A DNA stretch of 64,000 nucleotides from the NCBI GenBank assembly GCA_964019335.1, contig OZ025713.1:436943-500942 (forward strand), in the 5' to 3' direction. The DNA comes from Diplonema japonicum. Lineage: Eukaryota; Protista; Euglenozoa: Diplonemea. The notes beneath the pieces were generated by a model that did not search any database, was not told where the DNA came from, and saw only the letters and a list, made by a program, of their open reading frames with translations. Positions within the stretch are counted from its first letter, which is position 1. Each line of letters begins with the position of its first letter. Both the position numbers and the translations under genes were made by a program. Positions 8,473-37,248 of the stretch are shown here, in pieces.

Positions 8473-9818
8473 ATAGCTTTTTATAGAATTTTACAGTCGA
8501 TTCTTTTTGACTTGTTTTTTGTACCCCCTCTCGGGCACTTCAGGAACGATATTTTTGACAATGTTGTGGGGGTGGGCCCTGCTGTGGGCACCCTCTCTCT
8601 AGAATTGGGACATCCCTTAGTAGCCAAAAAAAAAAAAAGTGTAAAGTGTTAAACAGCCAGCAAAGCTTGTGGAAAGAGAACACCAAGAAAAAAAAAGAGA
8701 GAGAAAAAAAGACCAGGACCACCCCCGATAACGTATAATTAAGAATAAAAATTGTGGGGGGGGAAGGATACTGAGGTCTGGCACCAGCGGATGAGGATGC
8801 GGGAAAGGGGGTTGCACTGCTTTCCCTGCCAAAGCTAGTCGAGGGTGCACACCTTGCGACATATGGGGCCCGACGGCACATGGTGACGACAGGAGACCAC
8901 TTTTCTCCTCGAGCCAAACAGCCCCTTACCTTGCATGACTCCATGTAATGTTCCTCGCCCAGATGCCGTCCATCTCATCACGACAAACAGCCACCGCAGG
9001 CACCAGACAGCAACCGCAGTACGGTGACCGATTAGTGTGGATTTCTACTTGAACAGTGAACACTCCCCTATGTGCACTGAAGCTTTATCGATTTTTTTAA
9101 TTTTTTTTATTTGCTTCCAAGCTTTCTCTTGAAACTTTTGATTGTTACCTCAAGTTAGTTACCGTTCTTACTGAGCGCCGTTTGACTTTGTCACCTTGAT
9201 GTTAAAAGATCGACTTTTTTTTTCTTCTTCTTTTTTTTATTTTTTATTTTCTTCTGATGACCGTGGTGGTCGAGCTTTCTTTACCTCTCCACTTTCGGGG
9301 CGAAGTTTAACAAGGGTGACCGCTGTGTCACATTCCGCATGGCACCACTAAAATCGAGTCCCCCCTCCCCCTTCTTCTTCTTTTTTTTTCTTTTTTTTTT
9401 TTTTCCAGTGTGTCTTCTCTTTTTGTTGTTCTTCTTTCACAAGCATTATTATTGTGCGCCTGTGGTGTGGGTTTACCTTCAACATGAATACAAGGGGGGG
9501 GGGGGGGGGGGGGAAGAAGAAGAAAAAAAATGGCGCCGGTGGGAGCATCAACGCCAACACAGTGCAAGTACCTGCCGATTTGGCAGGTTCGAAGCTCTGT
9601 GCCGGAGGTACCGCATCGTGATCGGCGAGACGTCGGCTCCGTCACAGGTGGGTAGAGTCTTGGGTCTGGAGTTCGACCTCCAATGCAAGAGATGGAGGAT
9701 GTGCAGCAAGTGGATCGAAGCCCTGAAACCGGTACTGGAGGACTTCGTGTTTGACAGACCCCTACAGCTTCGGAGGTGGTGGAGGCTCTGCGGTCTTGTA
9801 CTTTGGCATCAGAGGATA

Positions 9819-10631
9819 ATGGAAGAGTCGGAGCTAAGCCGGGAGAAGAAGAACAAAATGCTCGTATTTTTCAAGGGGCTGTTGGTGGCTCTCCTGCGGT
9901 GCAAACCGCGCAACCCCATCAGCTTCTGTGAGAAGTACGTTGAAGAAAAAGTAGAAGGCGACGAACTAGAAACCAGCCTGTGCAGAAGCTGGAGGGGAGA
10001 CTTCAACACCTACGACTTCACCAGAGACACCTCAGACGTGTTCCAAGTAAATAACCGAGATGTCTATGGGGAGTACGAGACTATTAGAAAAACCCTCGAC
10101 TTCAACTACCACGGTAACTACTCAAAAACCCGACAAGCAGTCCAAGACATAGCGGTCTCCGACGTTGTCCTGGGCGGTGAACTCAAATCCGAACCCTGGC
10201 TCGTCTACACAGCAGGAGCAATGGGGGCTGGGAAGTCCCATGTTATCAGGTGGATGTCCGACCACGGGTATTTCCCACTACCGGACATCGTTCAAATAGA
10301 CCCCGATCGGTTCAAAGAAATGCTCCCAGAATGGCAGGGCTACATGGAGCATGACCCCATGCAAGCTGGGGGTAGAATGCGCAAGGAATCCGGGTATCTA
10401 GTTGAAATCGCACAGCACAAGGCAATGGACATGGGCAAGAACGTGTGGGTGGACGGGTCCCTGCCCAGAGCACTGGCTAGGGTTGAGCTGCACACCACAT
10501 GCATTAAGGACACAACGTGGAACGCAAACGCGGCCGAGGTGCACCCTGTCACTGGTCTCCTTTACCTCTTTTATTGTTGCGTGGTTTATTTTGTCTTGAA
10601 ACTACATTTCGCGTTAAAATTTTTGTTTTAA
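9819..10631 (+). pseudogene. Second truncated kinase copy
   Basis: Same as 1697-2509. Confidence 0.85.
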
Positions 10632-15023: not shown

Positions 15024-18000
15024 TGCAGGCCGTTGCTAACCACTTCGTTCTGTTATTTTCATTATTCTTTCCGGCGATAGACTGATACGGGCCATGGAAG
15101 CAACCTCTGCTTAATTCCTGGTACGTGGGAGGCTCCTCTGAGGATGTCAGTCACCTTTTTCCCTTTTTTATTCGACTCTCTGTTTTCGTATGCAGTATTT
15201 ATTCTTTTCCACCCCTTTTTATCTATTTTTTCGCTTCTCTATTCTAACTTAACCATCTATCAACGAGCGTCTATATATAGACGATTTGAAAAAAAATCTT
15301 TTACGCAAAGGGCTTTCAATGCAATACGGCCCGGCTCTTTCTTGCCGGCGGGGTCCTGGAAAATATGAAAAATATAAACTAAATGCTGCCCTAACTTAAC
15401 AAGAAAATGAAAAAATAAAAAAAACGCCAGCCCAAATTTACCCTTAAAAATCACTTCAAAAAAAGGCGCCCGGAAAGAGGCCGGAAGAGGACGTCATGAG
15501 TGATGGCAGCACTGATGGCTCATCCCTATTATGCAATTTTGATACAAACAGTGATTCTGACACGAATTCGACCGATTCCGAGTCACAGCAGGGTGATTGG
15601 ACGGCAAAGCCGGAGCAGTTGGAAGGCATCCGGTTTCGTGAAGATCGGAATCCTTGTGGACCCTGTTTTGACATCAAAGGCTCAACGCCATACCATATAT
15701 TCTCCCAAATGCTCGTCCCAAACTTTATTCGGGTCATAACTTCGAACAATGTGGCAAATGCGGCTAAAAAAGGTGTCTCCCTGGATCTTGGATATCAAGT
15801 CAGATTATTCTGATTACTGGTGCACTGGCTCCACGTTTCTCAACTACACCCCTGGGTACGCCACCGTCATGTCAAGAGACCGCTTTTTGACTATTCTGGG
15901 AAATCTGTGTTTCCACAGCGAAACAAACAAGCGTGCTGACTTCTACCTATCGCCAAGGCCTCCCGGAGATCATGGATGCCCCAAAGAAGCGAGGCCGCAA
16001 GCCCAAGGACGCGCATCCCGTGGGGACACAGTTCCACCAGCACGCGAGCATCCTTTGCACCACAACGTGGCATGACATCAAGCCTGTGTGCTTTCTATCG
16101 ACGTTGGATGTTCCAGTGAAGTCAAATTTGACCGTCCGCCAAAAGAGAATGAAAGCCGGAAAGGACATCTTGTTCCCACCAAGTGCATATTTACAACACC
16201 GCAATGGGCGGAACCGACGCTGGGTGATGCTGTGACAAAACGCCATAAACGCACCCTTATGACTTAAAAGTGGCCCCTAAAAGTATTTTCGTACTTGTTA
16301 GGTAAATCTCTGGCGAATGCTTGGCTTGTTTGGAAAGAAGCCTTGCCCCCCAACACCCTGAGTACGAACGACAGTGTATTGACGCCTTTCAGAGAGGCAG
16401 TCATCGAAGGGCTACTAGGGGAGGCAGTCTAAACAACAGATAAAGTCAACTACAGAGCAGGCTGCCCCAATACCATGCCCCGAAACACAGAACGAGTGCT
16501 CTGAGACCCCAATGCGCCGTGACAGTACCTTCTGGGGCCATTTCCCCGAAAAAGTAGTGCAACGTGCGGTGCAAGCATTTCAAGTCGAAAAGACCCCTAT
16601 TTCAGTGTTCAGCCTGCTTGGTACAACTTTGCGTGACTCCGTGCTTCAAAGACTGCCACCTTGCCGGGGATACCCCCAGAAACCCCTCCCGGGGTCAAAA
16701 AAGAAGTCCCCCAGCCCTGGGGCACGTACGAACCGCGTCAAGAAGGCCTTAAATAGCTTTTTATAGAATTTTACAGTCGATTCTTTTTGACTTGTTTTTT
16801 GTACCCCCTCTCGGGCACTTCAGGAACGATATTTTTGACAATGTTGTGGGGGTGGGCCCTGCTGTGGGCACCCTCTCTCTAGAATTGGGACATCCCTTAG
16901 TAGCCAAAAAAAAAAAAAGTGTAAAGTGTTAAACAGCCAGCAAAGCTTGTGGAAAGAGAACACCAAGAAAAAAAAAGAGAGAGAAAAAAAGACCAGGACC
17001 ACCCCCGATAACGTATAATTAAGAATAAAAATTGTGGGGGGGGAAGGATACTGAGGTCTGGCACCAGCGGATGAGGATGCGGGAAAGGGGGTTGCACTGC
17101 TTTCCCTGCCAAAGCTAGTCGAGGGTGCACACCTTGCGACATATGGGGCCCGACGGCACATGGTGACGACAGGAGACCACTTTTCTCCTCGAGCCAAACA
17201 GCCCCTTACCTTGCATGACTCCATGTAATGTTCCTCGCCCAGATGCCGTCCATCTCATCACGACAAACAGCCACCGCAGGCACCAGACAGCAACCGCAGT
17301 ACGGTGACCGATTAGTGTGGATTTCTACTTGAACAGTGAACACTCCCCTATGTGCACTGAAGCTTTATCGATTTTTTTAATTTTTTTTATTTGCTTCCAA
17401 GCTTTCTCTTGAAACTTTTGATTGTTACCTCAAGTTAGTTACCGTTCTTACTGAGCGCCGTTTGACTTTGTCACCTTGATGTTAAAAGATCGACTTTTTT
17501 TTTCTTCTTCTTTTTTTTATTTTTTATTTTCTTCTGATGACCGTGGTGGTCGAGCTTTCTTTACCTCTCCACTTTCGGGGCGAAGTTTAACAAGGGTGAC
17601 CGCTGTGTCACATTCCGCATGGCACCACTAAAATCGAGTCCCCCCTCCCCCTTCTTCTTCTTTTTTTTTCTTTTTTTTTTTTTTCCAGTGTGTCTTCTCT
17701 TTTTGTTGTTCTTCTTTCACAAGCATTATTATTGTGCGCCTGTGGTGTGGGTTTACCTTCAACATGAATACAAGGGGGGGGGGGGGGGGGGGGAAGAAGA
17801 AGAAAAAAAATGGCGCCGGTGGGAGCATCAACGCCAACACAGTGCAAGTACCTGCCGATTTGGCAGGTTCGAAGCTCTGTGCCGGAGGTACCGCATCGTG
17901 ATCGGCGAGACGTCGGCTCCGTCACAGGTGGGTAGAGTCTTGGGTCTGGAGTTCGACCTCCAATGCAAGAGATGGAGGATGTGCAGCAAGTGGATCGAAG

Positions 18001-18744
18001 CCCTGAAACCGGTACTGGAGGACTTCGTGTTTGACAGACCCCTACAGCTTCGGAGGTGGTGGAGGCTCTGCGGTCTTGTACTTTGGCATCAGAGGATAAT
18101 GGAAGAGTCGGAGCTAAGCCGGGAGAAGAAGAACAAAATGCTCGTATTTTTCAAGGGGCTGTTGGTGGCTCTCCTGCGGTGCAAACCGCGCAACCCCATC
18201 AGCTTCTGTGAGAAGTACGTTGAAGAAAAAGTAGAAGGCGACGAACTAGAAACCAGCCTGTGCAGAAGCTGGAGGGGAGACTTCAACACCTACGACTTCA
18301 CCAGAGACACCTCAGACGTGTTCCAAGTAAATAACCGAGATGTCTATGGGGAGTACGAGACTATTAGAAAAACCCTCGACTTCAACTACCACGGTAACTA
18401 CTCAAAAACCCGACAAGCAGTCCAAGACATAGCGGTCTCCGACGTTGTCCTGGGCGGTGAACTCAAATCCGAACCCTGGCTCGTCTACACAGCAGGAGCA
18501 ATGGGGGCTGGGAAGTCCCATGTTATCAGGTGGATGTCCGACCACGGGTATTTCCCACTACCGGACATCGTTCAAATAGACCCCGATCGGTTCAAAGAAA
18601 TGCTCCCAGAATGGCAGGGCTACATGGAGCATGACCCCATGCAAGCTGGGGGTAGAATGCGCAAGGAATCCGGGTATCTAGTTGAAATCGCACAGCACAA
18701 GGCAATGGACATGGGCAAGAACGTGTGGGTGGACGGGTCCCTGC
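10465..18744. repeat. Tandem amplicon unit 2 (8280 bp)
   Basis: Differs from unit 1 by +150 bp in the LRR array, +7 A and +1 T in homopolymers, and one substitution noticed (4728 C vs 12850 T). Confidence 0.95.
12444..14111 (+). CDS. UBL-LRR protein, copy 2 (14 core repeats)
   Basis: As 4322-5839 plus a duplicated HY+DS repeat pair and one T->M change. Confidence 0.9.
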   Translation: MNGKREGSGEEVNDMTVFAKTGGGVHDVEVSGKETVGILYKKAGCAAGLLEGKFELVWEGEVLDRNGGEDIQELGLVEGSVVHVEAKKMRTVQLEELESSEVVSELEELVTAVPELVLVVEVGNSPAVEVLSMKTMVLPSGLRFLVVTDSTGCVTRIGSGFLQECDHLTSVDLILPNVSTIDDFFLYECKNLETINLNAMTNLSSIGHYFLYGCEKLETIDLNAMTNLSSIGDSFLHGCVKLETIDLNAMTNLSSIGHYFLYGCEKLETIDLNAMTNLSSIGDSFLHGCVKLETINLNAMTNLSSIGHCFLYGCEKLETIDLNTLTNLSSIGHNFLSWCEKLETINLNAMTNLSSIGHCFLYGCEKLETIDLNTLTNLSSIGNRFLFECKKLETIDLNAMTNLSSIGIGFLSWCEKLETINLNAMTNLSSIGHYFLYGCEKLETIDLNTLTNLSSIGDGFLSGCEKLETINLNAMTNLSSIGDDFLSGCEKLETIDLNAMTNLSSIGHNFLSWCEKLETINLNAMTNLSSIGDGFLEGCVKVETVDLNLKRKVGV

Positions 18745-22142: not shown

Positions 22143-22174
<32 letters not shown>

Positions 22175-22490
22175 TTTTTTTTTGTGCATTTACCGTGAAA
22201 GTACAATGCATAAAGGGAAACTCAAGACCAGTGTTGAAGAAATGGATCATTATGCCTAAAGCTCTCCCTGGTGCTTCGTACCTCAACTCTGCGAAACAAA
22301 CTGCGGATATGTATCCCTACTAGTCACTTTCTGTGTCCCCCTGCATACGTATTTTAGCTATGTGTAGACACTGCTGTGTACATAAACAACATGCTTGTCT
22401 GTCTCGTCGTCACTCGGGTCCTCTTCACAGTGCGATGCTTGAGTGCACGTTTCGTATGGACAGCCAGCTGTCCGTCTTCCTTTTTCCGTT

Positions 22491-24234
22491 AAAAAAAAAA
22501 AGAGACATTTAAGGGTACCTGCGGTATGTGGCAGGACGCCTGAAGAGTCTCAATCTATCTCTTGATCGAACCTTTCTGCTGTGGTGTGGCCTTCGGCCCC
22601 TCGTTCGCCCTCCTCGGTACCTTAGGTATAAAACCCTCAACCGAGTTGGTAAGGACACAATAGTTGTACAGTTGTTTCTCAAGGATGTGGTGGGTCGCCG
22701 GGGAGGCGAATACCGGTCTAGAGGAGTAGCCCCTTATGGAGCCGTTGTAGTAACCCAACGTGCGTAGGGAGTGGACAGAGGCTACCGAAGCAGCTGGAAT
22801 GAGGGGCGCTATGCGCTTATTGGTGTGGATGCGTTCTAGTGCCGCTATCACCCGGCCTATGACACGCACGCTCTCCTGGATGTCCTCACCCTCTCCACAA
22901 GGCGAGAGTCCCTCTGTGGCAATGAAGTCCACGGCCAGCTCAAGCTGGAGACCTGTCCACCTGTTGTGCCCCAGTGAAGGGCCGAGAGCCATCGGATGAC
23001 GTGCGGGAATAGCCGCGGGAGGTACTGTTGCCTCAAACCGTTGTCGTAGTACCACCTCAGTGACCGCGGCTTGAGCAAACTCCCCTTCTCGAAGGGCCTG
23101 TCACAAGTGAACACTGAAGTCCACTGTCTTCTTTCGTGCAAAGGCGAGTTGCAAGTTACCAGTAATCTCCGCCATCATTAGCTGTAACTCAGCTGTTTCC
23201 AGCACGAGTCCCCCCGTCGCAATGCCATGCAGTTGTGTGCACTGGGGCCACTGGTTACGTTGTGCGCATAGTGCCGCCCGCTTCTCGGATGCTGTCCTGA
23301 TGTGCTCGTGTGCCTGACAGTCCCAGAGGGTGTGCTCCAGGAGCCTTGATGTGTGTTGCGAAACGTTGAAAGTAGCATCGCATCCCATGCATTTCGTCCG
23401 CCCCCCGACCGTGTCATTGATGACCTTGGGGTGGAATGGGAAAACGGCCCCCACTATCACCTGTAGCACCCTTCGAGCTTCGGGCGGATTGCGAGTCGCC
23501 AGGTGTAAGTGTAGCCCGTTGGTGGCCTTCTCGTCGATGTTGCCCGTCCCCTGAAAGGAGGGTCTGCTCTCTTCTAGGGCCGTTCGCAGGTGGGCCTTCA
23601 GGAGCTTCCTGACCTCGTGCTTCAGGGCCCTTGGCTCCAGGGGTACCCATTGCCACGCAAACTGTGCCCAGCTGTACCCCAGTTCCCCCAACAGTTCGTG
23701 GGTCTGTCCGAGCATCCCGCAAGGGCCGAGGGGGCTCCCGCCCCGGGCGGCTTCCTTGTACTTGTCCCTGCACGTCTTAACGAGTGCCCTGGACCCTTCG
23801 TCGCTCTGCATCATTCGCGCAAACGTCGTGATTCTGCGGTATGCGGCTGCTGAATAAGGGTCCAGCCTGTGACCTTTGAAAGCCACCCCAAGGAGGGCTC
23901 CCGATGAGCGAGTCGGGTTGTGTGGGCCCCATATGGGAGAGGTAATTTTCTTCCTGAGGGAGTCCAGAAGCGAGTCCGTGGGCGGTGTGTAGAGCACTCC
24001 ATAGAGCGCCGCTGGGAGGATGCAGTCCTCTATCAGTAGAGCCTTACGCGATCTCGTGATGTGGGTTACCGCGAGCCTGTCGACCGCATCCAGCGCCGTG
24101 GCAAACCTAGTGTTCTTCGTTTGGGTGGGCTGCAAGCACACTGTGCACCCCAGCATAGTAATGCTTTTCACTGTTTCAAATACGGTGTCCCTCATTGCCA
24201 GCTTGCCTCTGTATCCCTTCTTTTCCCCGGGTCT
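22491..24234 (-). mobile_element. 5'-truncated non-LTR retrotransposon (post-RT region + CCHC knuckle), frameshifted, T-tailed
   Basis: RKALLIEDCILPAALYG post-RT motif; CMGC...EHTLWDC zinc knuckle; stop at 22555, short 3' UTR, then T-run. Confidence 0.75.
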
Positions 24235-24513
24235 AAAAAAAAGCAAGTAAAAGAAAAGAAAGAATAAGATATTTGTACACACCTGAGCACCTTCCCATAC
24301 ATGAAGTAAAATGCCTGTTGGACCCTCAAAAAAAAAAAAATAGCCAAATCGCCTTTTTCTAGTTTGGCATCGTCATCAGACTGATACTAAAATTCTTCAT
24401 TCTTTTTTTTTTATTATTATCTCCCCCCCTCTTTTTTTTTTTCTCAGAGAAGTTGTAATCGTTTCATATTATATAATCCCCCCTAAACCCCTACCGACCC
24501 CTTACCCCAGGTT

Positions 24514-26505
24514 TCACACATAAACTCCACCTACTGAACATCCTATGTTTTTCCCTCTTGTGAAGGTGTCGGCTTTCTGATGCTTGGAGGGCACCCATTT
24601 TATCGTGAGCCTGGTATTGGCGACTTCAAGCAGGCGGGTTATTGACTGCATAATGTAATCCACTGGTTGGTGCACCACCGATTTAGTACCGCGGATGAGC
24701 TTGACGACTGACATGTTGTCTACTCGGAGGGTGATGGCCCTTGGGTTGCAGGTGCGTATAGCAAAGATGATGCCCTCCCTTGCAGCGAGCAATTCCTTCA
24801 AGAAGATGTCACTAGACTCGGATAGCAGCTGGGAGAAGGTCCCTTGTGCCACATGGGGCTTCGGCAACTCGAGCAGTACTCCCCAGCCCAAGTGAGAGGC
24901 ATCCGTCCACACCTCCAGTTCATCGGGATGCCTCTCTACCTCCGTCATCGGCTCGTCCTGGATATCTTGCAGCACTGACATAGCAGTCAAGGTCAGTTGC
25001 TCATATTCTTCTGCTGTCAGCCTTCTCTGCACGGGAGGTGTTTTTTTCTTTTTTGTTGGTGGTACTTTTGCAGTGGCATATTCCACTACAAAGGATACTA
25101 CGTCTGGCGAAAAATTTAGCAGAGCGTTTTTCACAGATTGCACGTCATTGTTTGTAAAGACCTTCCGTGTTACGTCATCTTTCTTTGACTTGTTCTGAAC
25201 TTGGTTACCAGCTTGTCCATCAGTTTTCGCCAGTATTTGCAGCTTCCTCAGAGATCGGATTTGAGCTTTTGGCAGAGCTTTCTGAGAGCTCAGGCTTTGT
25301 TTTTTTTTAGGCTTCAAACTCAGAACTTCGAGTCGTTTATCCAGAATATATTTAACAGTGTTTGCCTGGTCCCTAAGAGCTGCTTGTTCCTTCGGTTTAG
25401 GTTCTTCTTGGGCTTGCTGTTGTTCCAGATCTGTTGCCTGTTGCATTGCAGCTTTTTTCAGGGTATTCCTCAAATATTTTTCAGTGGTTCGTTGTGCTTT
25501 CTTCAGAGATAGCTGTTTCTTCTGAGTTGCCCGTTTCTTCAGAGCTGCCTGTTTCTTCAGAGCTGCCTGTTTCTTCTGCGTTGCCTGTTTCTTCTGAGTT
25601 GCCCGTTTCTTCTGAGCTTTTGACTGTTTTAATTTAGCTACTTTCTTCCGCAGAGCTTTTGCTGCAGTCTTCGCGGCTTGTTGTTTTTTAGCTTGTTTCT
25701 GTAATTTCAGAGCTTTTGCCTGTTTCTGCTTAATTAGAGCTTTCTTTTGTTTCTGTGTCATTGTGGCTTGTTTCTGTGATTTCTTCTGAGCTTTTGCCTG
25801 TTTCTGCTTAATTAGAGCTTTCTTTTGTTTCTGTGTCTTTGCGGCTTGTTTCTGTGATTTCTTCTGAGCTTTTGCCTGTTTCTTCATTTCAGCTTTTTTC
25901 CGAGTTTGCAGTTCCTCAAGTCGTTTTTTAGCTTCTGCCCGTTTCTTCAGGGCTCGACTTTCTTGTTTATTCAGAACTTGCGCCTGTTTCTTCCGGGCTT
26001 GTCCTTCAGTGTCTTCTAGTACGTTCAGTTGTTCTTTTGGAGCTTTTTTTCGGGCTTGTTGTTGGTTTGTCTGTTGCCTAGCTTTTTCCAGGGCTTGCTG
26101 GTTCTCCGTGGCTTTTGCTAACTGCCGTACTTCTTGTGCTATGGCCTGCGCCCGATCAGTTCTCTTTTGAGCCACACTTTCAGCTGACACAACTTGTTTC
26201 CGTAGTTCAGTCGGATTTGTTTGATCATTTTCTTTCCGTTTTCCAGCCATCACCGGCACTTGGTACACAACGTGCCTCTTTAGAGGTTGTTGTGCAACTT
26301 TTGCCAGTGCATCTTGCAGAGATAGGTTTCCAACTTTCGCCTTCTTTGGAGCTCCTTCAAGGTGCTTGGACAGCCGGGGTTGTAGACTATGAGTCACTTT
26401 TAATGACTCAGCCCTCGTGACCATAGCCGGTTGCTGTTGTTGTACAGGAACCTCAGGTGCCATCGGGGGCCGCCTGGGAACACATCGAAGGATCACCCGT
26501 GCCAT
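24514..26505 (-). CDS. Lys/Ala/Gln-rich protein with C-terminal DIRS-type RNase H (catalytic residues present)
   Basis: VWTDASHLGWG, IFLKELLAA, LRVDNMSVV, WVPSKHQKADTFTRG; first ATG at 26505 (MARVILRC...). Confidence 0.85.
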   Translation of the reverse strand: MARVILRCVPRRPPMAPEVPVQQQQPAMVTRAESLKVTHSLQPRLSKHLEGAPKKAKVGNLSLQDALAKVAQQPLKRHVVYQVPVMAGKRKENDQTNPTELRKQVVSAESVAQKRTDRAQAIAQEVRQLAKATENQQALEKARQQTNQQQARKKAPKEQLNVLEDTEGQARKKQAQVLNKQESRALKKRAEAKKRLEELQTRKKAEMKKQAKAQKKSQKQAAKTQKQKKALIKQKQAKAQKKSQKQATMTQKQKKALIKQKQAKALKLQKQAKKQQAAKTAAKALRKKVAKLKQSKAQKKRATQKKQATQKKQAALKKQAALKKRATQKKQLSLKKAQRTTEKYLRNTLKKAAMQQATDLEQQQAQEEPKPKEQAALRDQANTVKYILDKRLEVLSLKPKKKQSLSSQKALPKAQIRSLRKLQILAKTDGQAGNQVQNKSKKDDVTRKVFTNNDVQSVKNALLNFSPDVVSFVVEYATAKVPPTKKKKTPPVQRRLTAEEYEQLTLTAMSVLQDIQDEPMTEVERHPDELEVWTDASHLGWGVLLELPKPHVAQGTFSQLLSESSDIFLKELLAAREGIIFAIRTCNPRAITLRVDNMSVVKLIRGTKSVVHQPVDYIMQSITRLLEVANTRLTIKWVPSKHQKADTFTRGKNIGCSVGGVYV

Positions 26506-26812
26506 CTTGGTAGTCCTGTGAATGTGAATAGGCTTTGACAAGTGCTGAATGAAATATGGCAATTAGCATACTGCACTTGGTTTGACCTGCTCCATGGAAA
26601 CAAAGCAGATTCCCGTTTGCTGAGGGCATGTGTCTGAGGTATGGTTCGAAGGTGTTCGAGGCAAGAGGCAGAATAAAGACAAATAAGATGGAAGATACTA
26701 AAAGTGAAGGGCAAAAGAGGAAGAAAAAAGGCCTAAAGTGAAAGAAAGAGATAACCCAGGGGAGGATTCCTGGACACCCACACCCAACTCATTTACTTCA
26801 CTTAACTTCACT

Positions 26813-27730
26813 TCACTTCACCACTTCCGTCGAATCAGTTAAAGTGCTCAATCGCTGCTTGAAGGGGGGCATCCACTCCACCGTAAGGTCGGTATCGTTG
26901 ATGCTCAACATGTGAAATATACTCTTTATTATAAGGTTCGCCAGTTTGCTGTGTGCAGAACCCCTGCGAATGTCAGTGATGGCAGCCGCACCTGGGATGA
27001 AGAGGGTGATGGCCTTCGGGTGGTGGGCACGTATAGCAAAAGCAATACTCTCCTTTGCAGCAAGTAGTTCCTTTACATAAATATCATCTGACTCAGAGAG
27101 TAGGCCTGAGAACTTCCCTTGTACCACACGGGGCTTGTGTGCTTCGTGTCCAGGCAGCTCAAGCACCGTCTCCCAGCTGTTCAAACGAGTATGTGTCCAC
27201 ACCACTGCCAGCCTTGTGCCAGTAACGTTCAACTGTGTCACTTGCTTACCACGTCGAAGCATTACTAGAGCGGATTTTGCCTTGTGAGCCAGCTCTTTGT
27301 ACTCGTGTTTTTTTAGCTTTCTGAAGCCTTGTTTCTTCTTTAATCGTGGCCAAGCCTTTCTAGCGTTCAGGGAACCGGGTTTTAAATTGTAACACCGCAG
27401 CACATGCCAGGTTGGCATGAGCCTCCTGTAGCCCCGCCCACTCTGTGGCCGTACCCCAACAACAAGCTGCTGCAGGCGCCGTTTCCATGCCCTCTTCGGG
27501 GCCTTTTTTCCCTTCATGAACAGCATGGTGACTGGGTGCTCAGACAGTGGTCGGGAGCGGGTGCGGCGGTATGCACGGAGCCTAGCTACACGTAGGGTGT
27601 CCACATTGAGAAGGGGTGTGGACGCGGTTTCAGGTGCAGCTGCATCCCGCTCCTCCAGAGCAAGAGGAGGCTCGGGTTCAATGGCCTTTGGCTTTCTAGG
27701 TAACCGCCTTGTCGAAAGGTATCGAAGCAT
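26813..27730 (-). CDS. Paralogue with degenerate DIRS-type RNase H
   Basis: QGKFSGLLSESDDIYVKELLAAKESIAFAIRAHHPKAITL aligns with the neighbouring gene; TDAS->THTR, VDN->IPG, KAD->RLS; ATG at 27730 (MLRYLSTRR). Confidence 0.8.
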   Translation of the reverse strand: MLRYLSTRRLPRKPKAIEPEPPLALEERDAAAPETASTPLLNVDTLRVARLRAYRRTRSRPLSEHPVTMLFMKGKKAPKRAWKRRLQQLVVGVRPQSGRGYRRLMPTWHVLRCYNLKPGSLNARKAWPRLKKKQGFRKLKKHEYKELAHKAKSALVMLRRGKQVTQLNVTGTRLAVVWTHTRLNSWETVLELPGHEAHKPRVVQGKFSGLLSESDDIYVKELLAAKESIAFAIRAHHPKAITLFIPGAAAITDIRRGSAHSKLANLIIKSIFHMLSINDTDLTVEWMPPFKQRLSTLTDSTEVVK

Positions 27731-27884
27731 AACTCTTGTCAGCTTGGGGCATCCTGTCAGGTTGTGAATACGTTTTACACAAGAGAGTAAAGGGAGGGTT
27801 TCACCCAAAGTCAGATTGTAGTAAAATCAAAGCAGCGTTTTTAGGGGATAAGAAATAATATGAGAAAATATAAGAGCTAAAAGA

Positions 27885-28050
27885 AGCTGGTGTTGGTGGT
27901 GCCCTACACAAAACTGTCTGCTTGATTACAGTGGGCACACTGCAGCCGAGTTGTAGCTTCTTCTATGTTCTGCACTGTGTCCTTAATGCATGCAGTGTAA
28001 GTTCAACCCCAGCTACCCAGGTCGACCCAGGTAACCAAGATTCGGCACTT
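27885..28050. repeat. Dispersed repeat family R1 (also 37861-38060, 38130-38400, part at 29000-29100; inverted at 2343-2405 and 10465-10527)
   Basis: Shared ttgtagcttcttct...gtccttaatg...caacccYagc...caggtaaccaagattc. Confidence 0.85.
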
Positions 28051-28232
28051 GTGCAGTTTACTCTGTATGTGTGAAAAAAAAAAAAAAAAAAAAAAAAAAA
28101 AGTGGGGATTGGTTTTTTTACACAGATTAACAAAAAAAAGGGGGGGGTTAAAACCCAACTCACAGCCTTCACGTGGCACCTCCTGTAAGTAAGCTTTGGC
28201 TGAAACCAATGTGAGCTATGGTAAACAAAAAA

Positions 28233-28292
<60 letters not shown>
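28233..28292 (+). repeat. (AAT)n microsatellite
   Basis: About 19-20 perfect AAT units. Confidence 0.97.
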
Positions 28293-28294
<2 letters not shown>

Positions 28295-28552
28295 ACAAGG
28301 GTGAGAGGGTAGGTTTTAAATGATGAGAAGAGTTAACAGAAGGAAGCCAAAGAGAGCAGTAGTGAAAAAGTGAATTGACAAGGGGGGAAAGAGGGAGGAG
28401 AAGCAGACGAAAGGGAAAAGAAACATGCAAGAGTGACACGGGGGTAGGGAACAAGCCCTCCAAGCCAATCCCAAAGCATGGAATAACCCTACACTGCAGA
28501 TCCAAGCTTGAGTACCACCCAACATCAACACTTAGGCACTGCCAAGGCAGAC

Positions 28553-28683
28553 CAGGTGTTGGTCAGTCCCATCCCATCCCCTAAAACGGAATACAGGCCT
28601 GGATGGGAGGACTCGATGGGACTCATGGGACTCTCCCCAACACTGTCATTATTTTTGATTTATTTAAAAAAAGATAGTTTTGC

Positions 28684-28718
<35 letters not shown>

Positions 28719-28995
28719 CCCTTTGGAAAAAAAAAAAAAAAATGGGGGAAAAAAAAAAGAGAAAAAAATCCTTGATTTTTTTTGACATACATGATGTGCT
28801 TACCTTTTTTTTTTTTTTTTCCTTCTTTTTTTCTTGTCTTCTCACATTTTTTCGCACACCTAAGCCAAGCTGTTGTTTCTGCTTTCCACATCAAATGTTG
28901 TATTTGGATGTAATAGAAAAGAGGGGAAATAATAAATAATATGTACAAGAGGAGGGTGTGTATGTTTATACAACCTGTGTAAACAGACTGGTTTC
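28553..28995 (+). mobile_element. Non-autonomous derivative of internal hAT element sequence
   Basis: Homologous to 33131-33363 and 33617-33716. Confidence 0.7.
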
Positions 28996-29511
28996 TTGCT
29001 TTCAGCACTGCGCCCCTAATGTTCAATGTACAGCTCAACCCCTGCATCACACCCATATGCCTGTTTGTTGCACATATTTTCATGTTATCCCCACCCCACC
29101 TGAAAATAATATATAGGATCTCAGCAGCCACCACCACGTGTGTGCACCCACCAACCTCAGTCCATCACACATTTCTTTTCGCTGTCAAAAGGTATGTACC
29201 CCTTGTTGGGTAAAGGGGTTGGCGATTAAGGGTGTTGCTTGGGTTCTCGGGTGGGTCATCTCACGATTCTTGTTCATAACGAACTCATCTTTCGCCTTTT
29301 ACTAAAGATGACCGTGGACATGGATCACTAAGTGATAACGTAATTTTTATAAAGGTCCAGCACCTTTCTTTTTTTTTTTGCACAGAAGACACCTTCACCT
29401 TAAGTAAGGAGAGGAATGTGTTAACCCTTCACGAACGCCTCGTGGCTGTACCCCCGGGTTCCCCTGTCGGCATCTTTTCTTTTCCTTTTTTATTCTCGAG
29501 GGGGGTGAGGA

Positions 29512-30685
29512 TATTTGTACCGCACACTGTGTTTCAAAAGTAAATAGCGATTTGAAAACTAAAAGGTGAAAAAACAACAAGGTGTGCTGATGCACGCTCA
29601 GCCCGCCTCTTCGCACGTCCCAGAGCACATTCCTCTCCTTGTCATGTCCTCGTTGAATAATCGAAGATTACTAATCGTGTTATTGTGTTTAAGACAGACA
29701 TTCGGGTACATATCCATCTTATACTGGATTCTAAGGTTTTCGGGGGTGAGAAACTGAACAAGGTTTCGACTTTAGACAACAAGGGAAATCTCCTACCCCA
29801 AAAAGCAAAAATGGATCACTCAAGGCTATTCGAGATAAAAAATTAAAAAAAAAAAGAAAGATAAAAATAGAAAAAAGAAGCTCCCAAGAAGGGCAGTTAA
29901 AGCGCAGCACTCGGCACGGTTCTGGGCTTCCCCTTGCGGTAGCTGCACACAGACTGTCGCTGTGAGGTGGCCTTGATTGCTTAACCAATGGAAACTAGCG
30001 AGATTTTTTTTCTTTTTTTCTTTTTTAAACCAATGGGGGCGGGGTGGGGCGATTTTTTTCTATGTAAGGTACAACAGAAAACAAAGGAAAGCTGTTCCAA
30101 ATAGCTCAGGAACACTGCGTTGCGGTCAGGAATTAACCTTTTAAGGTTCCTGCATGACTGCAGCACAACGAGTATCCCGGTTCTATTCTAGTTGCAGCAA
30201 GAGCAAACTACCGTCAATCTTGAACTTGCTAGGGGGTCAAACGATTGGGCTACTTTAAAGCGATGGTTGCAAAGCGGCTTTACTGTTTTTGTTTTTTAAA
30301 AAGCTTCATGAAGGGTGGTGGACATTCTGACACAGGTGAACCTGGCAACCCCGTAGGGTTCCTTCATAGGTCTTTGCCGTGAGGTGGCTGTCTTCTGTTT
30401 TATGAGATCGACATTAAGCGAGATAAAAAGTTATTTTTTTTAAATTTAAGTGCAGGGCAAAATAGCAGGGAATACTGCATGGCACCACAGGGAATCAAAC
30501 AGCCATGTATCTGTTCTTATCTTATATCTGATACAGCACCTCGTTATTTGTACCACGCGCACTGTGTTTTGAAATAAGATAAATAAGGTTTTGAAAACTA
30601 AAAAGGGTGTAAAAACAGCAAAGTGTGCTGATGCACGCTCACAGTGCGTCATCCGCCCACCTCTTCGCACGTTCCAGAGCACATA
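29512..30685 (+). repeat. Diverged ~120-140 bp direct repeat pair (29512-29630, 30546-30683)
   Basis: atttgtacc...tgaaaactaaaa...gtgtgctgatgcacgctca...ctcttcgcacgt.ccagagcacat in both. Confidence 0.85.
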
Positions 30686-30879
30686 CCTTCAGTAATTGGA
30701 GATTACTTATCATTTTGTCGTTGGGGGTAGCTCAGGGCAATCTGAATCTAGGTGAGGTGTTGCCCTGGAGCTGCACAACATCCGGGAGTTTTTTTTAATC
30801 CATGATGTTCGTGCAGCGGAATTGTATTTTGCATCTGGTGAGGAAGAAGAGGAAGCTTCACAGAGCTACAGGAATATGT

Positions 30880-31354
30880 GAGTGGGTGTCCTTGATTCAC
30901 TGTGCGTACGACGCAAGGCCACTGTCCCACGAAACTCCTTCAACAAGTCTGGCCTTGTGAAGCTGCTAAAAGAAAAGGGAGAGAAGGAGAAGGCCGTTGA
31001 TACGTTCGGACGGGATGCACGTGCAGAACCTACCCGGGTCGCTGAGGACAAGTCAAGGACACGATGGATCCTACTGGACGGAATCTGTGGGAGGAAAGAA
31101 AAGGAAGATGGAAATTCTTTTCTCACCTAAAGGCTGCGATTGGCGGACAGGGTATACCAGACGGTTTCTTCGTTCTTTCTGACAGACAGAAGGGGCTGGA
31201 GGAGGGTGATAAAAGAAGAAGTCCCCCTGTCATGTGGGCAGATGCATGTATGGCATTTCTTCAAGTAATTTTGTTGAAGCTTAAGAGCAGCAACTGCAAG
31301 AAGTGTAAGTGGCACAATGGCTGCGACACTGTGTATCGGATCGATTCCGAGTAG
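30880..31354 (+). mobile_element. MULE (Mutator) transposase relic
   Basis: WKFFSHLKAAI...FFVLSDRQKGL motif typical of the MULE DDE domain. Confidence 0.65.
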
Positions 31355-31992
31355 ATTGCTTTTTCAGTTTTGGACAAACGTGTTTCTCAATACCCCTCTT
31401 GGTGAAACTGACAGAGGTATGGGTGCCAAACCAACATGCTTCATCATCTTAGCAGATTTAAACTCAACACTGAAGTTAAAACTCATCATCCACCAACTTT
31501 ACAGGTTTCTTGTAAAATTGTTGCTTCAACAAATGTGGGTGGGACTTGAGGGAACACCTTTGAGTTGCGCCTCGTTTTGAGGAACACAACCCGCTTTCAC
31601 GGACAAATGTGTCCCAGTAAAGCAAGTTAAATGTAATCTCTTGACAAGATTGACAACGACCCGATTTGACAGCCAAACGCACCACATCCTTGTGTGTATG
31701 TCTGGCAGTCAGATCAGTTATCAAACAAGCTCAGCAGACGACTTTTCACTACTTAAATATTAGAACTAGAAGAAACTTGGCATGTGGTGCTACCACCCAT
31801 TTTTTTACACCCGTTTTCATTCCTGCAGCTTTTGTAGCCTTTTTTACTGGTGGAAAAGGACAGCCACTCCAACGAAAAGCCCCTGCTGTCACCAATTCTG
31901 TCCAGAAATCCTCGTATCTTCCACAACACATCACCGTTTGACTCTTCTGTGTGAGTGAAGTAGAGGCTAGTACGTCTCCTGGGCATCGTCTA

Positions 31993-32161
31993 GTGTTTGT
32001 GAAGACGAAAGCAGGAGTTCACGATTTGGAGGTGGCTGGGACGGAGACAGTGGGGAACCTGTACAGGAAGGCGGGGTGTGCTGTGGTTTGCTGAATGGGA
32101 TGTTCAAACTAGTTTGGGAGAAGGAGGTCCTGAGCAGGTTCAGGGATGAGGATGTTCAGGG
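31993..32161 (+). pseudogene. UBL-domain fragment paralogous to the UBL-LRR N-terminus
   Basis: VFVKTKAGVHDLEVAGTETVGNLYRKAGCA, 1-nt deletion, then GLLNGMFKLVWEKEVLSRFRDEDVQ; cut by the hAT TIR. Confidence 0.85.
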
Positions 32162-35100
32162 CAGTGTTGTTACGAGAATGGGTTGCCCCCCCGAGATTTT
32201 CGGGGGGGCAAATCCAGGGGGGTGGGGGGCAAAAAAAATTTTTTATAGTGTCCAAAAAAAATTTTTTTCCACCCAAAAAAAGTTGTCAAAGACACCCAAA
32301 AATTGATTTTTTTTTCCAAAAAAAAATTTTTTTTTCCTCAAAAGTACCTATCCTAGGCCTTAATAGAGGCTTTTAGTGAAGTGGGGTGAAAGTGAGATGT
32401 TTGGGGGTCAAAAAAAGAGGTGCCCAAAAAAAATTATTTTTCACATGAACAAGTGGTCAAAAACACCTGAAAAGTGGTTTTTTACCTGTCCTGTGCCACC
32501 ATCTGGACATGTGTGCACTTCAGGGAGTGGGTAGAACAGTGTTGGTCCAGACCCTTGAGGGACTCAGGGGACTCCAAGGGACAGGACAGGAGTCCCCTGA
32601 AATTTTCAGGGGTCTGGAGGGGACTCAGGGGACTCAGGGGACTGAAGGGACTCAAGGGACTCAGGGGACTCAGGGGACTCTTGGGACCAAAAAATTTCTT
32701 TGTGTTTTTTGTGTCACAAAGACCCAAATTTAGGCTGGGGCTTGCATTTTTTTGGTACTTTTGGTTTCAAAAGTTCAAAATAAGAGGTCCTAGGTTTGGG
32801 TGGGATGTGAGGCAAGGCTCATACTACCTTGTTGTGACTATGTAAAAAAAAGAAAAAAAAAAAAAATTAAAAAAAATGTCAGGGGGTTTGGAGACCTGCT
32901 TTGAAAAAAATATTAAAAAGAGGCCTTTGCAAGAAAAGTACAATGCAAAAAAAAAAAAAAAAAAAGTAAAAAAAGGGATGGGCAGTGTTGGCCAGACTGG
33001 GGTCTGAGGGGTCTGGCCCACAAACCACCCCAACACTGCAAATTTTCGACCACACCATGTGGTGTGTTGTGACATATTTTACACCATATTTCACATACCT
33101 GATGTTCCACATGATGTATGCAACACAGGGCAGTGTTGGTCAGTCCCGTCCCGTCCCCTAAAACGGAATACAGGCCTGGACGGGACTCACGGGACTCCAC
33201 GGGATAGGACTCGACGGGACTCACGGGACTCCACAGGACTCTCCCCAACACTGTCATTATTTTTGATAGTTTTGCAACTTTTTTTTTTTTTTTTTTTTTC
33301 CCTTTGGAAAAAAAAAAAAAAAAATCCTTGATTTTTTTTTTTGACATACATGATGTGTTTACCCAGGGTTGGTCAGACCAGACCAGTCTGGTAAAACCGA
33401 AAATACAGGTCTGAGGGGTCTACTGACCAGTCTGGCCCCAACTTTTTTTTTCCTTCGTCAGGTGTCTTGCCACACACCACAGGTACCCTAAATGTCTTTC
33501 TTTTTCTTTTTCTTCTTCTTCATACCACAGACATGCACAGCTCCATCAAGCCATTTGACACATTTGCACCTATCTACTCCGGTTCACTGCAGCTGCAGGT
33601 ATGTACATATGTCCTGAAATGTTGAATTTGGATGTAATAGAAAAGGGTGGAAATGATAAATAATATGTACAAGAGGAGGGTGTGTGTTTACACAACCTGT
33701 GTAAACAGATTGGTTCCTTAATCGTATTTAAAAAAAGAAGGGGGGGAAGCAATATATTTTTACAGGTGGGTAATGGGTGAGTGTGTTTATGTTTTGAACA
33801 ACTGTGTAAAACAGTGCTCAGATATCGACCTGTGTAAACAGATCAGTTCCTTCCTTTCCAAGGTGCTCAGCTCTTTTCGAGCGGCTTGCCTTTTCTTTCT
33901 TCTCGCTCACAAAAAAATTAGGTTGAACCAACTTGTAGTTGATAGCAACACGGATTGATGCATTTAGAACATCCAATGACATTCTGCATCTGGCTTTTGA
34001 CAAAGTCTTTGAAATCACTTTAAAGTGACGCTCCGTTGGTGCCTCAGAGGTTAAACTGTGCCCAAGCGTCAGCACAAAGACAGCTAGCGTGTGAAGCATG
34101 CCAAGCTTCGAGTTCCAAAAAGCAAAAAAGTTTAACGTTGGGCTGCGACCTATTGCTAGGTACTCGTCAATCTGCATCCCCAGCTGCTGCCGATCTGCCA
34201 TCATTTTTCGCAATTCAGCGAACGGGACGAGGTGATCCAGCAGTGTGTTTCGCAGTGTGACCAAGTCTGAAAGTTCTCCAGTTGATACTTTGGGATTCAG
34301 AAAAGTATACAACCTGATACCAAGAAACGACATGTTTCGTTCGGCCCTTGCTTCATAAACCTTGATGACTTCAGAGACTGTGGTAGCATTGAGTTACCCC
34401 TCCACCTGGGATTCAAGGAATTTCTTCAAGCTCTTTCCAACAACGAAAATTTCATATGCCACCATAGCCATGCCAGATGTGTCCCCTTGCACACGATCTG
34501 TCGCAACTGCGAAGGGCGTGGAAATCTGTATCGCGAATTCCAGCTCTGCCCCAAACCCTGCCTCTATGCCTGGAAAGAATTCTAGGAGATCAAGGATGGA
34601 CTTCATCGTTTCGAAAAACGAATTCCATCTGGTCTTTGTGTACCTCTTGATCTGTCTCGTCTTTTCACGGCATACTCCATGTGAGACCTGTACGGTGTGG
34701 AGTGCCAACTGCCCAGCTTTCGAGGTCCATCTCTTGATCAGCGTTTTCACTTTGGCTCTAATGTTAGCCAGTCGCTCAATCTTGAAGATGTCACCAAGGG
34801 CAAGTTGCATGGAATGTGCAACACAACGATATGCTAGGACACCTTCACAACTCAGCATTGTAGTTGTATCGTTCAAAAGCTGGTCCATTCTGGCAGAGAG
34901 CTCAGTGTTGTCGGAGTTGGTGTCGGTTTCAGAGTTGGAGTCAAGGTCAGTGACACCTGAAGCATCACTACTGCTAATGTTGCTGCTAACATCCTCAGTG
35001 TCGTCGAGTGAGAGGTCGAGTTCCACTTCGAAGTCTCGATGTATCTTTGCAAGCGCTGCTTGCATCGCACTAGCATTATCAGCACATACTGAAAATACAT

Positions 35101-36502
35101 GTACAACATGGCTCCGAAGTTCCAGTATCATTTCACGGATGTGGGACGAAATGACAGCAGCAGTGGCACTCACTTTTGTAAGGTCTATCATCTTGCAAAA
35201 GTAGCTGTTCTTCCCATCTGACATACTAATGCCAAGGATGCTTCAACGGTTTATTGTGGCCCCATCAACAAGGAGGTACACATTCTGCCCTTGGAGCCTG
35301 TTTAGGACAGCAGCGTATGTCTCCTGTCCAAGTTCAACAACACAGCTTTGCACGTGTTTCCTGTTGATTCCTTTCAATTTGCCTGCATCGAAAAAGCTGT
35401 GAAAGAACTTTCGATCACACAAAACAAACGGCAGGCAATACAGGCAAAGGAAAATGGACACACGATCCACCATACTCAGGGCTCGCATCTCTTGGACAAC
35501 ACATCTCTTTGCTGCGAGATTTGAGCCTTGAGAATGAGGCGAACCCTGTGACAGCGACAACCCTGGCATTGGCTCAGAGATCAGACGGCACTTTTCTTTC
35601 ACTGGACTGCACTTTTCTTTTGCCAGCTTGGGGATCTTTGCAGCTGTCTTCTTCTTCAGCTTTTCTGCCAATTTCGCTTTCGCACCAGGGCTGTGTCTGC
35701 ACTCCCAGTGCTCCTTCAGCTTCCCCGATCTTGACCAGATAGTCACCGCACGTTCAACACACTCAGGGGCAAGACACAGCCGCTTCTCCATGACCGTGCC
35801 ATCCTTTTCCTTTGTCACTATCTTGCCAAAGTAGTACTCCTTAGAAGGGTCGATACCATGTGCATCACCAACAGACCATGTCTTGTTGTCCCAGATGGAT
35901 GTCTTGGGTGTTGTAGAACATTCCTTGGCAGGTGCTTCCAACATGACTAGTGCGTTTCCGGACGAGGTGTGTGTTGCCTTAGGTTGTAAGGCTTCAGCCT
36001 TCAGAACTTTGATGGTGTCTTGTAGCTCTGTGATTCGTGCTTTTGCAAGACCAAGTTTTGCCATGGTATCACGAAGCTGGTATGGGTTGTGGTTTATCGT
36101 CTTTATAGCCTCAAGACGATAAACCCGTTCATCTTCCACATTTGGGGGGAAGTGGTGCAGGTACCCAGGATCCTGTGCATACTCACACGAAACAGCAACA
36201 CCTGGCAAGATGCCAACAATCTTCCCATCCCAGACAGAAACCATGTCGTCCTGTGTTGGTTTCTTGTGTCGCTCCCCTCCAGTGCCCCAGAAGTGGGCTC
36301 TGAAGGTTGTGCCTTCTCCTTTCCCCTTCATGAAATGCAACATTTCATCATGGCTGAGGCCATTCTTGTTGCCAGTCTGGGTAAGGTCTTGTGTTTTCAC
36401 ATATTTCTGTGAGAACACAGTTGATGCCTTTTGCGTTGAGATGCGTCCATCGATGCTGCCACTGCTGCTGCTTGTACTTGAACTTTCTCTTTTGCGCTTC
36501 TT

Positions 36503-36538
<36 letters not shown>

Positions 36539-37248
36539 CAAATGTTTAAACCTTTCTCTTCATTTTTGTATTGATTTCCTCCTCTTCTTCCTCCTCCTCT
36601 AGTTCAGATTTACCTGAACATAGCCCATGCCATATTGAGTTGGCAGTCATGTTTCTGGTGCTTATCCTCTGCACCCTCTGCACCCCTTTCACCTTCTTCG
36701 CTACTTGGCACAGCTTCGGTGTCGGGAACGAAGAACAGAAGCAGAACAAGTACCACAATCATTTTATCTGTTAATTGTAAAAAATAATACAAAGAAAATG
36801 ATAAACAAAGGCTAAATACTGTATAAATACACATCGACTCTGACAGCAATGCAACACAATGTGAAGCAACATGATGTGTTTTCTGTTCACATTTCATTCA
36901 CTTGACACAAAAAATGTGAAGTAACACAACACAACACACCAAAGTGTCGTTTTATATTGTACCATACAGTGTATAAAATATTTTCTGTGTCGAAATTTCT
37001 AAAAAAAACTCCCAGAAGGGCTGCCCTTTCATAACTGAATGTTAGATTTTTTCTTCTTCTTTTTTTTTTTTTTTTTTTACATAATTTGTGTTGTACTTTT
37101 GTCATGATAAGGAATACATGCCAGGTCTTTTTTTTTTTTTTTTTTTTTTTTTTTTGCATTGTACTTTTCTTGCAAGCCTCTTTTTAATATTTTTTTTTCA
37201 AAGCTGGTCCCCAAACCCCAAGACATTTTTTTTAATTTTTTTTTTTTT

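Follow-up and report, generated by a model that had tools for sequence, protein, structure and literature searches.

Two adjacent genes of the diplonemid Diplonema japonicum, here called gene 1 and gene 2, lie on the minus strand of a 64,000-nt stretch of contig OZ025713.1 (positions 436,943 to 500,942; in the following, the window) and end in the same ribonuclease H (RNase H, RH) module; taken as a whole, they probably belong, with a third gene outside the window (gene 3), to a small tandem family of host genes which goes back to one capture of a retrotransposon RNase H. Each of the three proteins consists of a 12-17-residue head, which is Arg-rich, acid-free and amphipathic, a long, very basic low-complexity arm (net charge +29 to +74), a helix derived from a pol gene, and an RNase H fold. 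The coordinates of all features are collected in Table 1.

The RNase H module and its active site

Over their C-terminal ~125 residues, genes 1 and 2 share 44% identity (E 6e-27); this identity and the coordinates bear out the sequence-only reading of this DNA, made from its letters without database searches, by which two adjacent minus-strand open reading frames (ORFs) share a C-terminal RNase H module. That reading had also assigned four acidic active-site residues to gene 1 and only the Glu to gene 2, and a multiple alignment confirmed both: the tetrad of gene 1 is D535 (in TDAS), E571 (KEL), D596 (VDN) and D646 (KAD), that of gene 3 is D239, E283, D308 and D357, and at the same columns gene 2 has H180, E221, P246 and S295, the Glu alone being retained. 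The catalytic columns were checked by family profile, in which TDAS and KEL align with the RNase H motifs of the reverse transcriptase (RT) of cauliflower mosaic virus (CaMV), and VDN with TDSQ of the RT of human immunodeficiency virus (HIV).

AlphaFold models of the two modules (mean confidence, pLDDT, 85 for gene 1 and 81 for gene 2) have an identical order of strands and helices, and the top Foldseek matches of both are archaeal and bacterial RNase HI and the RNase H domains of HIV, Ty3 and CaMV RTs; as modelled, both modules, with a mixed sheet of five strands flanked by helices, are type 1 RNase H folds of the retroelement branch. Pfam gave no family for the ORFs of genes 1 and 2 at E-values up to 1, PF00075 and PF01693 included, which is weak evidence because Pfam also fails to recognise RH in the RT-RH ORFs of this genome; for the neighbouring ORFs it gave nothing of use either. 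Atlas features pointed to PF17917/PF13456 clusters, though the score was just 0.92; alignment of gene 2 to the RT-RH profile with hhalign reached 98% probability, over the RH part only.

Origin in a tyrosine-recombinase retrotransposon

Elsewhere in the D. japonicum genome (62.5 Mb in 132 contigs were searched) the module recurs with 30-45% identity at the ends of longer frames, which carry RVT_1 (PF00078) and lie directly downstream of frames with Phage_integrase (PF00589), the tyrosine recombinase (YR). Three families of YR retrotransposons (A, B and C) are present, with the ORF order gag-like, YR, RT/RH; loci of family A carry PF00589, PF00078 and RH. In databases the gene 1 module has RT-RH proteins as its only relatives, the best from Diplonema ambulator; a profile search yields thousands of them and is dominated by RT columns, as two full RT-RH rows had made the RT part profile positions, and it still gave the outgroups and the EukProt P0032 match. 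The invariant columns of the RT-RH protein alignment, W-x-D-A-S...W, K-E-x-x-A, D-N and A-D-x-x-T-R-G, are all present in gene 1. These motif columns, the neighbouring Phage_integrase ORFs, in this genome as in D. ambulator, and the tree described below back the initial assignment of the module to the RNase H pattern of DIRS-class YR retrotransposons.

A maximum-likelihood tree built from 76 RH domains shows the three genes as monophyletic, with the branching (gene 2,(gene 1,gene 3) 99/79) and a clade support of 98/92, and the clade is sister to element family A of D. japonicum together with the RT-RH protein of D. ambulator (98/95); the phylogeny proposed along with the sequence-only reading places the genes beside the RH of YR elements. 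The terminal branches of the three genes are long (0.71, 1.24 and 1.59), so that long-branch attraction cannot be fully excluded. The tree agrees with independent characters, namely a head common to genes 1 and 3, a motif common to genes 1 and 2 (LLSES...KELLAA, with 73% DNA identity over 135 nt), and a common element boundary: in all three genes the element-derived part starts at the same point, with a KKKK-type patch followed by one helix and then RH. In gene 1 this start is where the tblastn alignment to family A begins, and the stretch is a helix in the AlphaFold model. The best reading of these comparisons is that the C-terminal RNase H part of a DIRS-order (VIPER/TATE-like) pol gene was captured once and then duplicated.

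Layout of the proteins and the third member

Read from alternative starts, the ORFs of the pair extend over 24514-26562 and 26813-27808; counting from the first ATG shortens both. From there gene 2 begins with the Arg-rich head MLRYLSTRRLPRK, which opens with M-L-R, and gene 1 with MARVILRCVPRR. The Arg-rich, acid-free N-termini already seen in the letters alone hold up: within its first 17 residues each protein has 4 to 6 Arg/Lys and lacks Asp/Glu. All three proteins are very basic (isoelectric points of 10.2-11.0), the arms having net charges of +74 (gene 1), +33 (gene 3) and +29 (gene 2), and between 175 and 530 residues of in-frame, non-element sequence lie upstream of each RH module. The arm of gene 1 has no Pfam family match; it contains two tandem repeats with periods of 18 and 78 bp, both multiples of 3, by which expansions keep the frame. 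The 18-bp period had been given correctly at the outset; the second had been taken as 72 bp, and was measured as 78 bp.

Gene 3 adjoins an upstream copy of the pair, 276 bp beyond a duplicated block (see below). Its N-terminus, MARLILRCVPRR, matches that of gene 1 in 11 of 12 residues; at the DNA level 3 of 36 nt differ, two of them synonymous, and the sequence flanking the head cannot be aligned. The head motif occurs only at these genes and nowhere else in the genome. The RH modules of genes 1 and 3 are 39% identical, with all four catalytic residues kept in both. The ancestral order of the locus is gene 2, gene 1, a fragment resembling a long interspersed nuclear element (LINE), and gene 3, all head to tail.

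A low-copy locus among repeats

Absence of an RT, of a YR and of terminal repeats, part of the sequence-only reading, was upheld by every search made: Pfam gave neither RT nor YR in genes 1 and 2, tblastn with the genome's own element proteins found neither between 22 and 30 kb of the window, in profile-profile comparison genes 2 and 3 matched the RT-RH alignment with their last 120-130 residues only, and around the pair there are no terminal direct or inverted repeats beyond homopolymers. The N-terminal parts of genes 1 and 2 have no other match in the genome. It had further been allowed for that the ORFs are parts of a multicopy RT/YR element; the module does occur in such elements, with at most 45% identity and hence as a distant paralogue, and element copies of the genes themselves were not found.

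Read depth was taken from contigs of public sequencing runs placed on positions 22900-28000 (5,101 letters). The gene pair is at baseline depth without variant letters; its flanks are 4 to 100 times deeper, with many variants. Base composition is of no help here, GC and GC at third codon positions giving no separation of host genes from elements in this genome.

The pair is present twice on the same contig, the identical second copy lying 50 kb upstream (gene 1 at G000:C66:411236-413281) within a 15-kb segmental duplication. The duplicate could be a very recent duplication, the outcome of gene conversion or an assembly effect.

Maintenance and expression

Pairwise comparison of the RH part of the three genes after Nei and Gojobori gave proportions of nonsynonymous differences (pN) of 0.43-0.55 and of synonymous differences (pS) of 0.59-0.71, with pN below pS in every pair. 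In simulations of frame survival at 0.2 neutral substitutions per site, which ignore indels and stay well under the synonymous divergence per lineage, gene 1 never remained free of stop codons (0 of 2000), and the chances of doing so for genes 2 and 3 were 0.006 and 0.001. The last 170 residues of gene 3 are identical to the EukProt P0032 protein EP01064_Diplonema_japonicum_P008460, which derives from a Trinity transcriptome assembly. Over the pair, four sequencing runs behave like DNA, with flat depth and one contig across the spacer.

It is quite likely that the three genes are a domesticated host gene family: this is the best reading because they are of low copy number, lack other element parts, have long open frames and show pN below pS. 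On the same grounds the co-option and duplication of a retrotransposon RNase H, as first proposed, stands.

Proposed function and compartment

To judge from the kept D-E-D-D tetrad, genes 1 and 3 most likely encode enzymes that cleave the RNA in RNA:DNA hybrids. The basic arm would be the grip on nucleic acid, in place of the RT part in the element or of the hybrid-binding domain (HBD) in cellular RNase H1; this is suggested because neither of the two is present. Gene 2, to judge from its sequence, is most likely a non-catalytic binder or regulator, because fold and open frame are kept and three metal ligands are lost. An active/inactive heterodimer of the products of genes 1 and 2 is possible and pure conjecture.

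The N-termini were compared with those of 69 distinct ORFs of at least 250 aa, a small sample which includes element and chance ORFs. At least four Lys/Arg and no Asp/Glu in the first 17 residues were found in 5 of the 69: the three genes, the mitochondrial chaperonin Hsp60 (MKKAATSTVMRTGRRTY...) and RNase H1, which begins within its own basic HBD. Over these 17 residues the three genes have a net charge of +4 to +6, and by helical hydrophobic moment they rank first to third in the set with 0.83, 0.83 and 0.72, the highest being that of gene 1, next to 0.71 for Hsp60 and a median of 0.38. Hsp60 is the single clean native presequence available for comparison, since the loci of ATP synthase beta and citrate synthase are split by introns or frames. 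A canonical RNase H1, with Cauli_VI HBD (PF01693) and RH (PF00075), is encoded at G000:C1:1146088-1146963 (L048:1489-2364) and starts directly with the HBD; no targeting extension was seen in the 15 open codons upstream, which hold no ATG, an upstream exon remaining conceivable. The main text of the diplonemid mitoproteome paper does not mention an RNase H.

Given domestication, a mitochondrial location is possible at somewhat less than even chances, and a nuclear one, for removal of R-loops or against elements, is rather unlikely, what remains falling to dual or other locations. The mitochondrion would be somewhat more likely than the nucleus because of the chemistry of the N-termini, the RNase H1 without extension, and kinetoplastid analogies. 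A more specific proposal, offered tentatively as it is itself doubtful, is that the family would supply the RNase H activity for the very large multipartite mitochondrial genome of a diplonemid whose canonical RNase H1 shows no evident targeting sequence, with import by the short conserved presequence, an arm tethering the protein to DNA in the manner of histone H1, and the dead gene 2 product as partner or regulator.

Alternative readings

Several observations weigh against a maintained family of RNases H with a role in the organelle. The ratio based on pN and pS is ~0.46-0.57 among the paralogues, and so not near 1, the value held from the start to speak against domestication; it is a rough upper-side estimate only, as dS is near saturation. 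The two copies of the pair are uninformative on selection, because the differences between the 15-kb blocks are too few. Lack of expression had likewise been named as a counter-argument: the 3' part of gene 3 is in the transcriptome, which is weak evidence of expression, and the transcriptome ORF begins at an internal Met and leaves the 5' part unconfirmed; for genes 1 and 2 neither an RNA nor a protein record was found in protein-database searches, the sequencing runs looking like DNA. Orthologues in other species were not found in protein-database and metagenome searches of limited reach, and synteny, the usual proof of domestication, is missing; homologue searches with gene 2, with the RH region of gene 1 and with its RH alone gave two RT-RH proteins or nothing, their reach being limited by the length window and the word index. 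An ATG in another reading frame precedes the start of gene 2 by 22 nt and opens an upstream ORF of 18 codons that overlaps the start codon (27696-27752, minus strand), the relevance of which depends on the site of spliced-leader addition. An RNase H domain taken out of its retroelement can be a poor enzyme, so that cleavage by these proteins is not assured. The Lys-rich arms and KKKK patches, finally, resemble nuclear or nucleolar localisation signals. The missing records and orthologues would also be expected if the pair were dead, 5'-truncated remnants of pol whose frames are open by chance, and it is in keeping with this that the ORFs have repeats on both sides, in a recently duplicated region rich in repeats, and that gene 2 has lost three catalytic residues. 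Such remnants are nevertheless improbable, since open frames of 305 to 663 codons are unexpected at the observed divergence, with pN below pS, and since the RH modules are preceded by the long in-frame non-element sequence described above; moreover, a derived head and layout unite genes 1 and 3 in spite of RH modules that have diverged so far, the three genes are monophyletic, and part of gene 3 is found in the transcriptome. Less probable still is a non-autonomous mobile element, or cargo of YR elements, that carries an RNase H gene only: the pair does occur twice on the contig, and a dispersed repeat that is also found downstream of family A elements lies 130 bp upstream of gene 2, but both copies are within one 15-kb block together with unrelated ORFs and a U5 small nuclear RNA (snRNA) gene, which indicates segmental duplication and not transposition, the depth is at baseline, terminal repeats are absent, and the dispersed repeat is oriented opposite to the genes.

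A different question is where a domesticated family would act. It could do so in the nucleus or nucleolus, by removal of R-loops or as a defence destroying or blocking the RNA:cDNA intermediates of related elements, with gene 2 as a catalytically dead decoy for element proteins or hybrids; this is a shade more doubtful than the service to the mitochondrial genome proposed above. In its favour, all three proteins have the Lys-rich arm and the KKKK-type patch before RH, as in classical nuclear localisation signals, related elements with open frames are present in the genome, and domesticated element genes often act against their relatives (PMC5146736). However, a canonical nuclear-type RNase H1 with an HBD is already present, a conserved acid-free amphipathic head is not needed for nuclear import, and kinetoplastid mitochondrial DNA enzymes also bear Lys-rich arms (PMC10719067, PMC2700280).

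Relation to known systems

The domesticated family, as it is read here, resembles the known VIPER-derived gene of Leishmaniinae, a single-copy host gene whose C-terminal ~500 aa come from the RT/RH ORF of a YR element and which consists of a conserved N-terminal region, a variable low-complexity region and the element region, further pieces of the element being absent from its surroundings (Ludwig and Krieger 2016, PMC5146736); the likeness is drawn from this published description and not from sequence comparison. [quoted passage not shown] The VIPER-derived gene, however, has kept RT and RH and lost the motifs of both, whereas in D. japonicum RH alone is kept, with the tetrad intact in two of three paralogues; its low-complexity region is Ala/Pro/Ser-rich and not, as here, Lys-rich and strongly basic; and it is one gene, syntenic across genera, in contrast to a tandem family with an inactive member in a diplonemid. 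What is new is the kept active site, the Lys-rich arm, and the tandem active and inactive members.

The RNases H of DIRS1/VIPER/TATE-like elements have the same motifs and the same fold and are nearest in the tree. Unlike the DIRS-order elements themselves, the D. japonicum genes are without RT, recombinase, gag-like ORF or terminal repeats, are not multicopy, and are fused to a non-element N-terminus. With cellular RNase H1 they share the logic of the layout, that is, an N-terminal signal, a nucleic-acid-binding part, a linker and a type 1 RNase H fold with D-E-D-D; there the parts are HBD and PF00075, neither of which was matched in genes 1 or 2, whereas the RH here is of retroelement ancestry. 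Among kinetoplastid proteins, the kinetoplast-associated proteins (KAPs) have a cleaved presequence of 9 residues that begins M-L-R, like gene 2, followed by a Lys/Ala-rich, H1-like body (PMC2700280), and Pol beta-PAK, a DNA enzyme located on the disc of kinetoplast DNA, has a basic low-complexity Pro/Ala/Lys arm of ~300 aa by which it is placed on mitochondrial DNA (PMC10719067). The likeness of both to the diplonemid proteins is one of composition and layout only, with no sequence homology detected. An inactive RNase H kept beside an active one is also known from retroviral and some Ty3/Gypsy pol genes; there the two are domains of one polypeptide in an element (PMC4408406), and here they are separate host genes.

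Host genes from YR retrotransposons are rare, and the described euglenozoan case is without enzymatic motifs and has no known role (PMC5146736). With a kept RNase H active site, a basic arm and a conserved N-terminal signal, cleavage of hybrids becomes directly testable in the present family, which offers a natural pair of an active and an inactive member. If mitochondrial, it would be a mobile-element enzyme recruited to the maintenance of the organelle genome in a lineage of extreme mitochondrial DNA content; if nuclear, it would be a candidate for an element-derived defence against its own relatives.

Features of the region

Table 1. Positions of the gene pair, its parts, its flanks and related loci (numbered within the window unless another locus is named).
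Feature	Position	Strand	Description
Gene 1, coding sequence from first ATG	24514..26505	minus	663 aa + stop; Arg-rich head, Lys/Gln/Ala-rich arm, helix, RNase H
Gene 1, N-terminal 12 codons	26470..26505	minus	MARVILRCVPRR; basic, acid-free, amphipathic, presequence-like
Gene 1, Lys/Gln/Ala-rich low-complexity arm	25120..26145	minus	residues 121-462; net charge +74; K 24%, Q 18%, A 15%
Gene 1, 78-bp (26-codon) in-frame tandem repeat	25691..25883	minus	2.5 copies, 94% matches
Gene 1, 18-bp in-frame tandem repeat	25498..25616	minus	6.6 copies
Gene 1, KKKK patch and helix preceding RNase H	24916..25119	minus	homologous to stretch just upstream of RNase H in retrotransposon RT-RH ORF
Gene 1, RNase H domain	24517..24915	minus	D535, E571, D596, D646
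Intergenic spacer	26563..26812	minus	~90-nt pyrimidine-rich tract (~26670-26760), then AG dinucleotides; read from sequence
Gene 2, coding sequence from first ATG	26813..27730	minus	305 aa + stop; Arg-rich head, Arg/Lys-rich region, helix, RNase H-fold module without catalytic tetrad
Gene 2, RNase H-fold module	26816..27205	minus	H180, E221, P246, S295 at the D-E-D-D columns
Left flank, high-copy LINE-like 3' fragment	22900..~24270 (24282)	minus	open 393-aa frame; depth 4 to 30 times that of the pair; no Pfam match
Right flank, ~200-bp dispersed repeat	27862..28062 (from 27859)	plus	~100 times baseline depth
15-kb segmental duplication carrying the pair	22151..37200 = G000:C66:408872-423902		22273-36433 identical but for one 1-nt indel
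Gene 3	G000:C66:407499-408596 (L005:1501-2598)		365 aa, D-E-D-D kept, Lys/Glu/Ala-rich arm; outside the window

The spacer between the two genes is a candidate trans-splice acceptor region for gene 1, given its pyrimidine tract and the AG dinucleotides after it. Downstream of gene 1 the LINE-like fragment is inserted just behind the stop codon; its open frame ends in a Cys/His motif (CMGC...H...C). The ~200-bp dispersed repeat on the other side of the pair has copies of 76-81% identity ~1.1 kb downstream of RH ends of family A (L026:6504-6648, L029:3626-3823), and could mark the end of an element or be a short repeat in its own right. In a public run labelled as another organism, two short contigs of low depth are identical to the 5' end of gene 2 and the sequence upstream of it, together with flanking repeats (27559-28000); a small amount of D. 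japonicum, or of a very close relative, is probably present in that run.

The central 14.2 kb of the segmental duplication are near-identical, and it is only in the outermost ~120 and ~770 bp that identity falls off. The U5 spliceosomal snRNA gene in the block is located at 29259-29366 of the window on the plus strand (82 bits), with a 99% identical copy on another contig (L029:8071-8187), and unrelated frames are found there as well. The two 15-kb blocks bracket a tandem array of Ubl-LRR/Zeta-domain genes. The Zeta-toxin-domain genes of this array (1463-1699, 9585-9821 and 17865-18101) each contain an in-frame RT-RH piece of 79 aa that is closest to family C: it shares 94% identity with residues 262-340 of that family's RT-RH ORF, against 39% with family B and 34% with family A; by its sequence, this appears to be a recent RT fragment inside host-like Zeta-domain ORFs.

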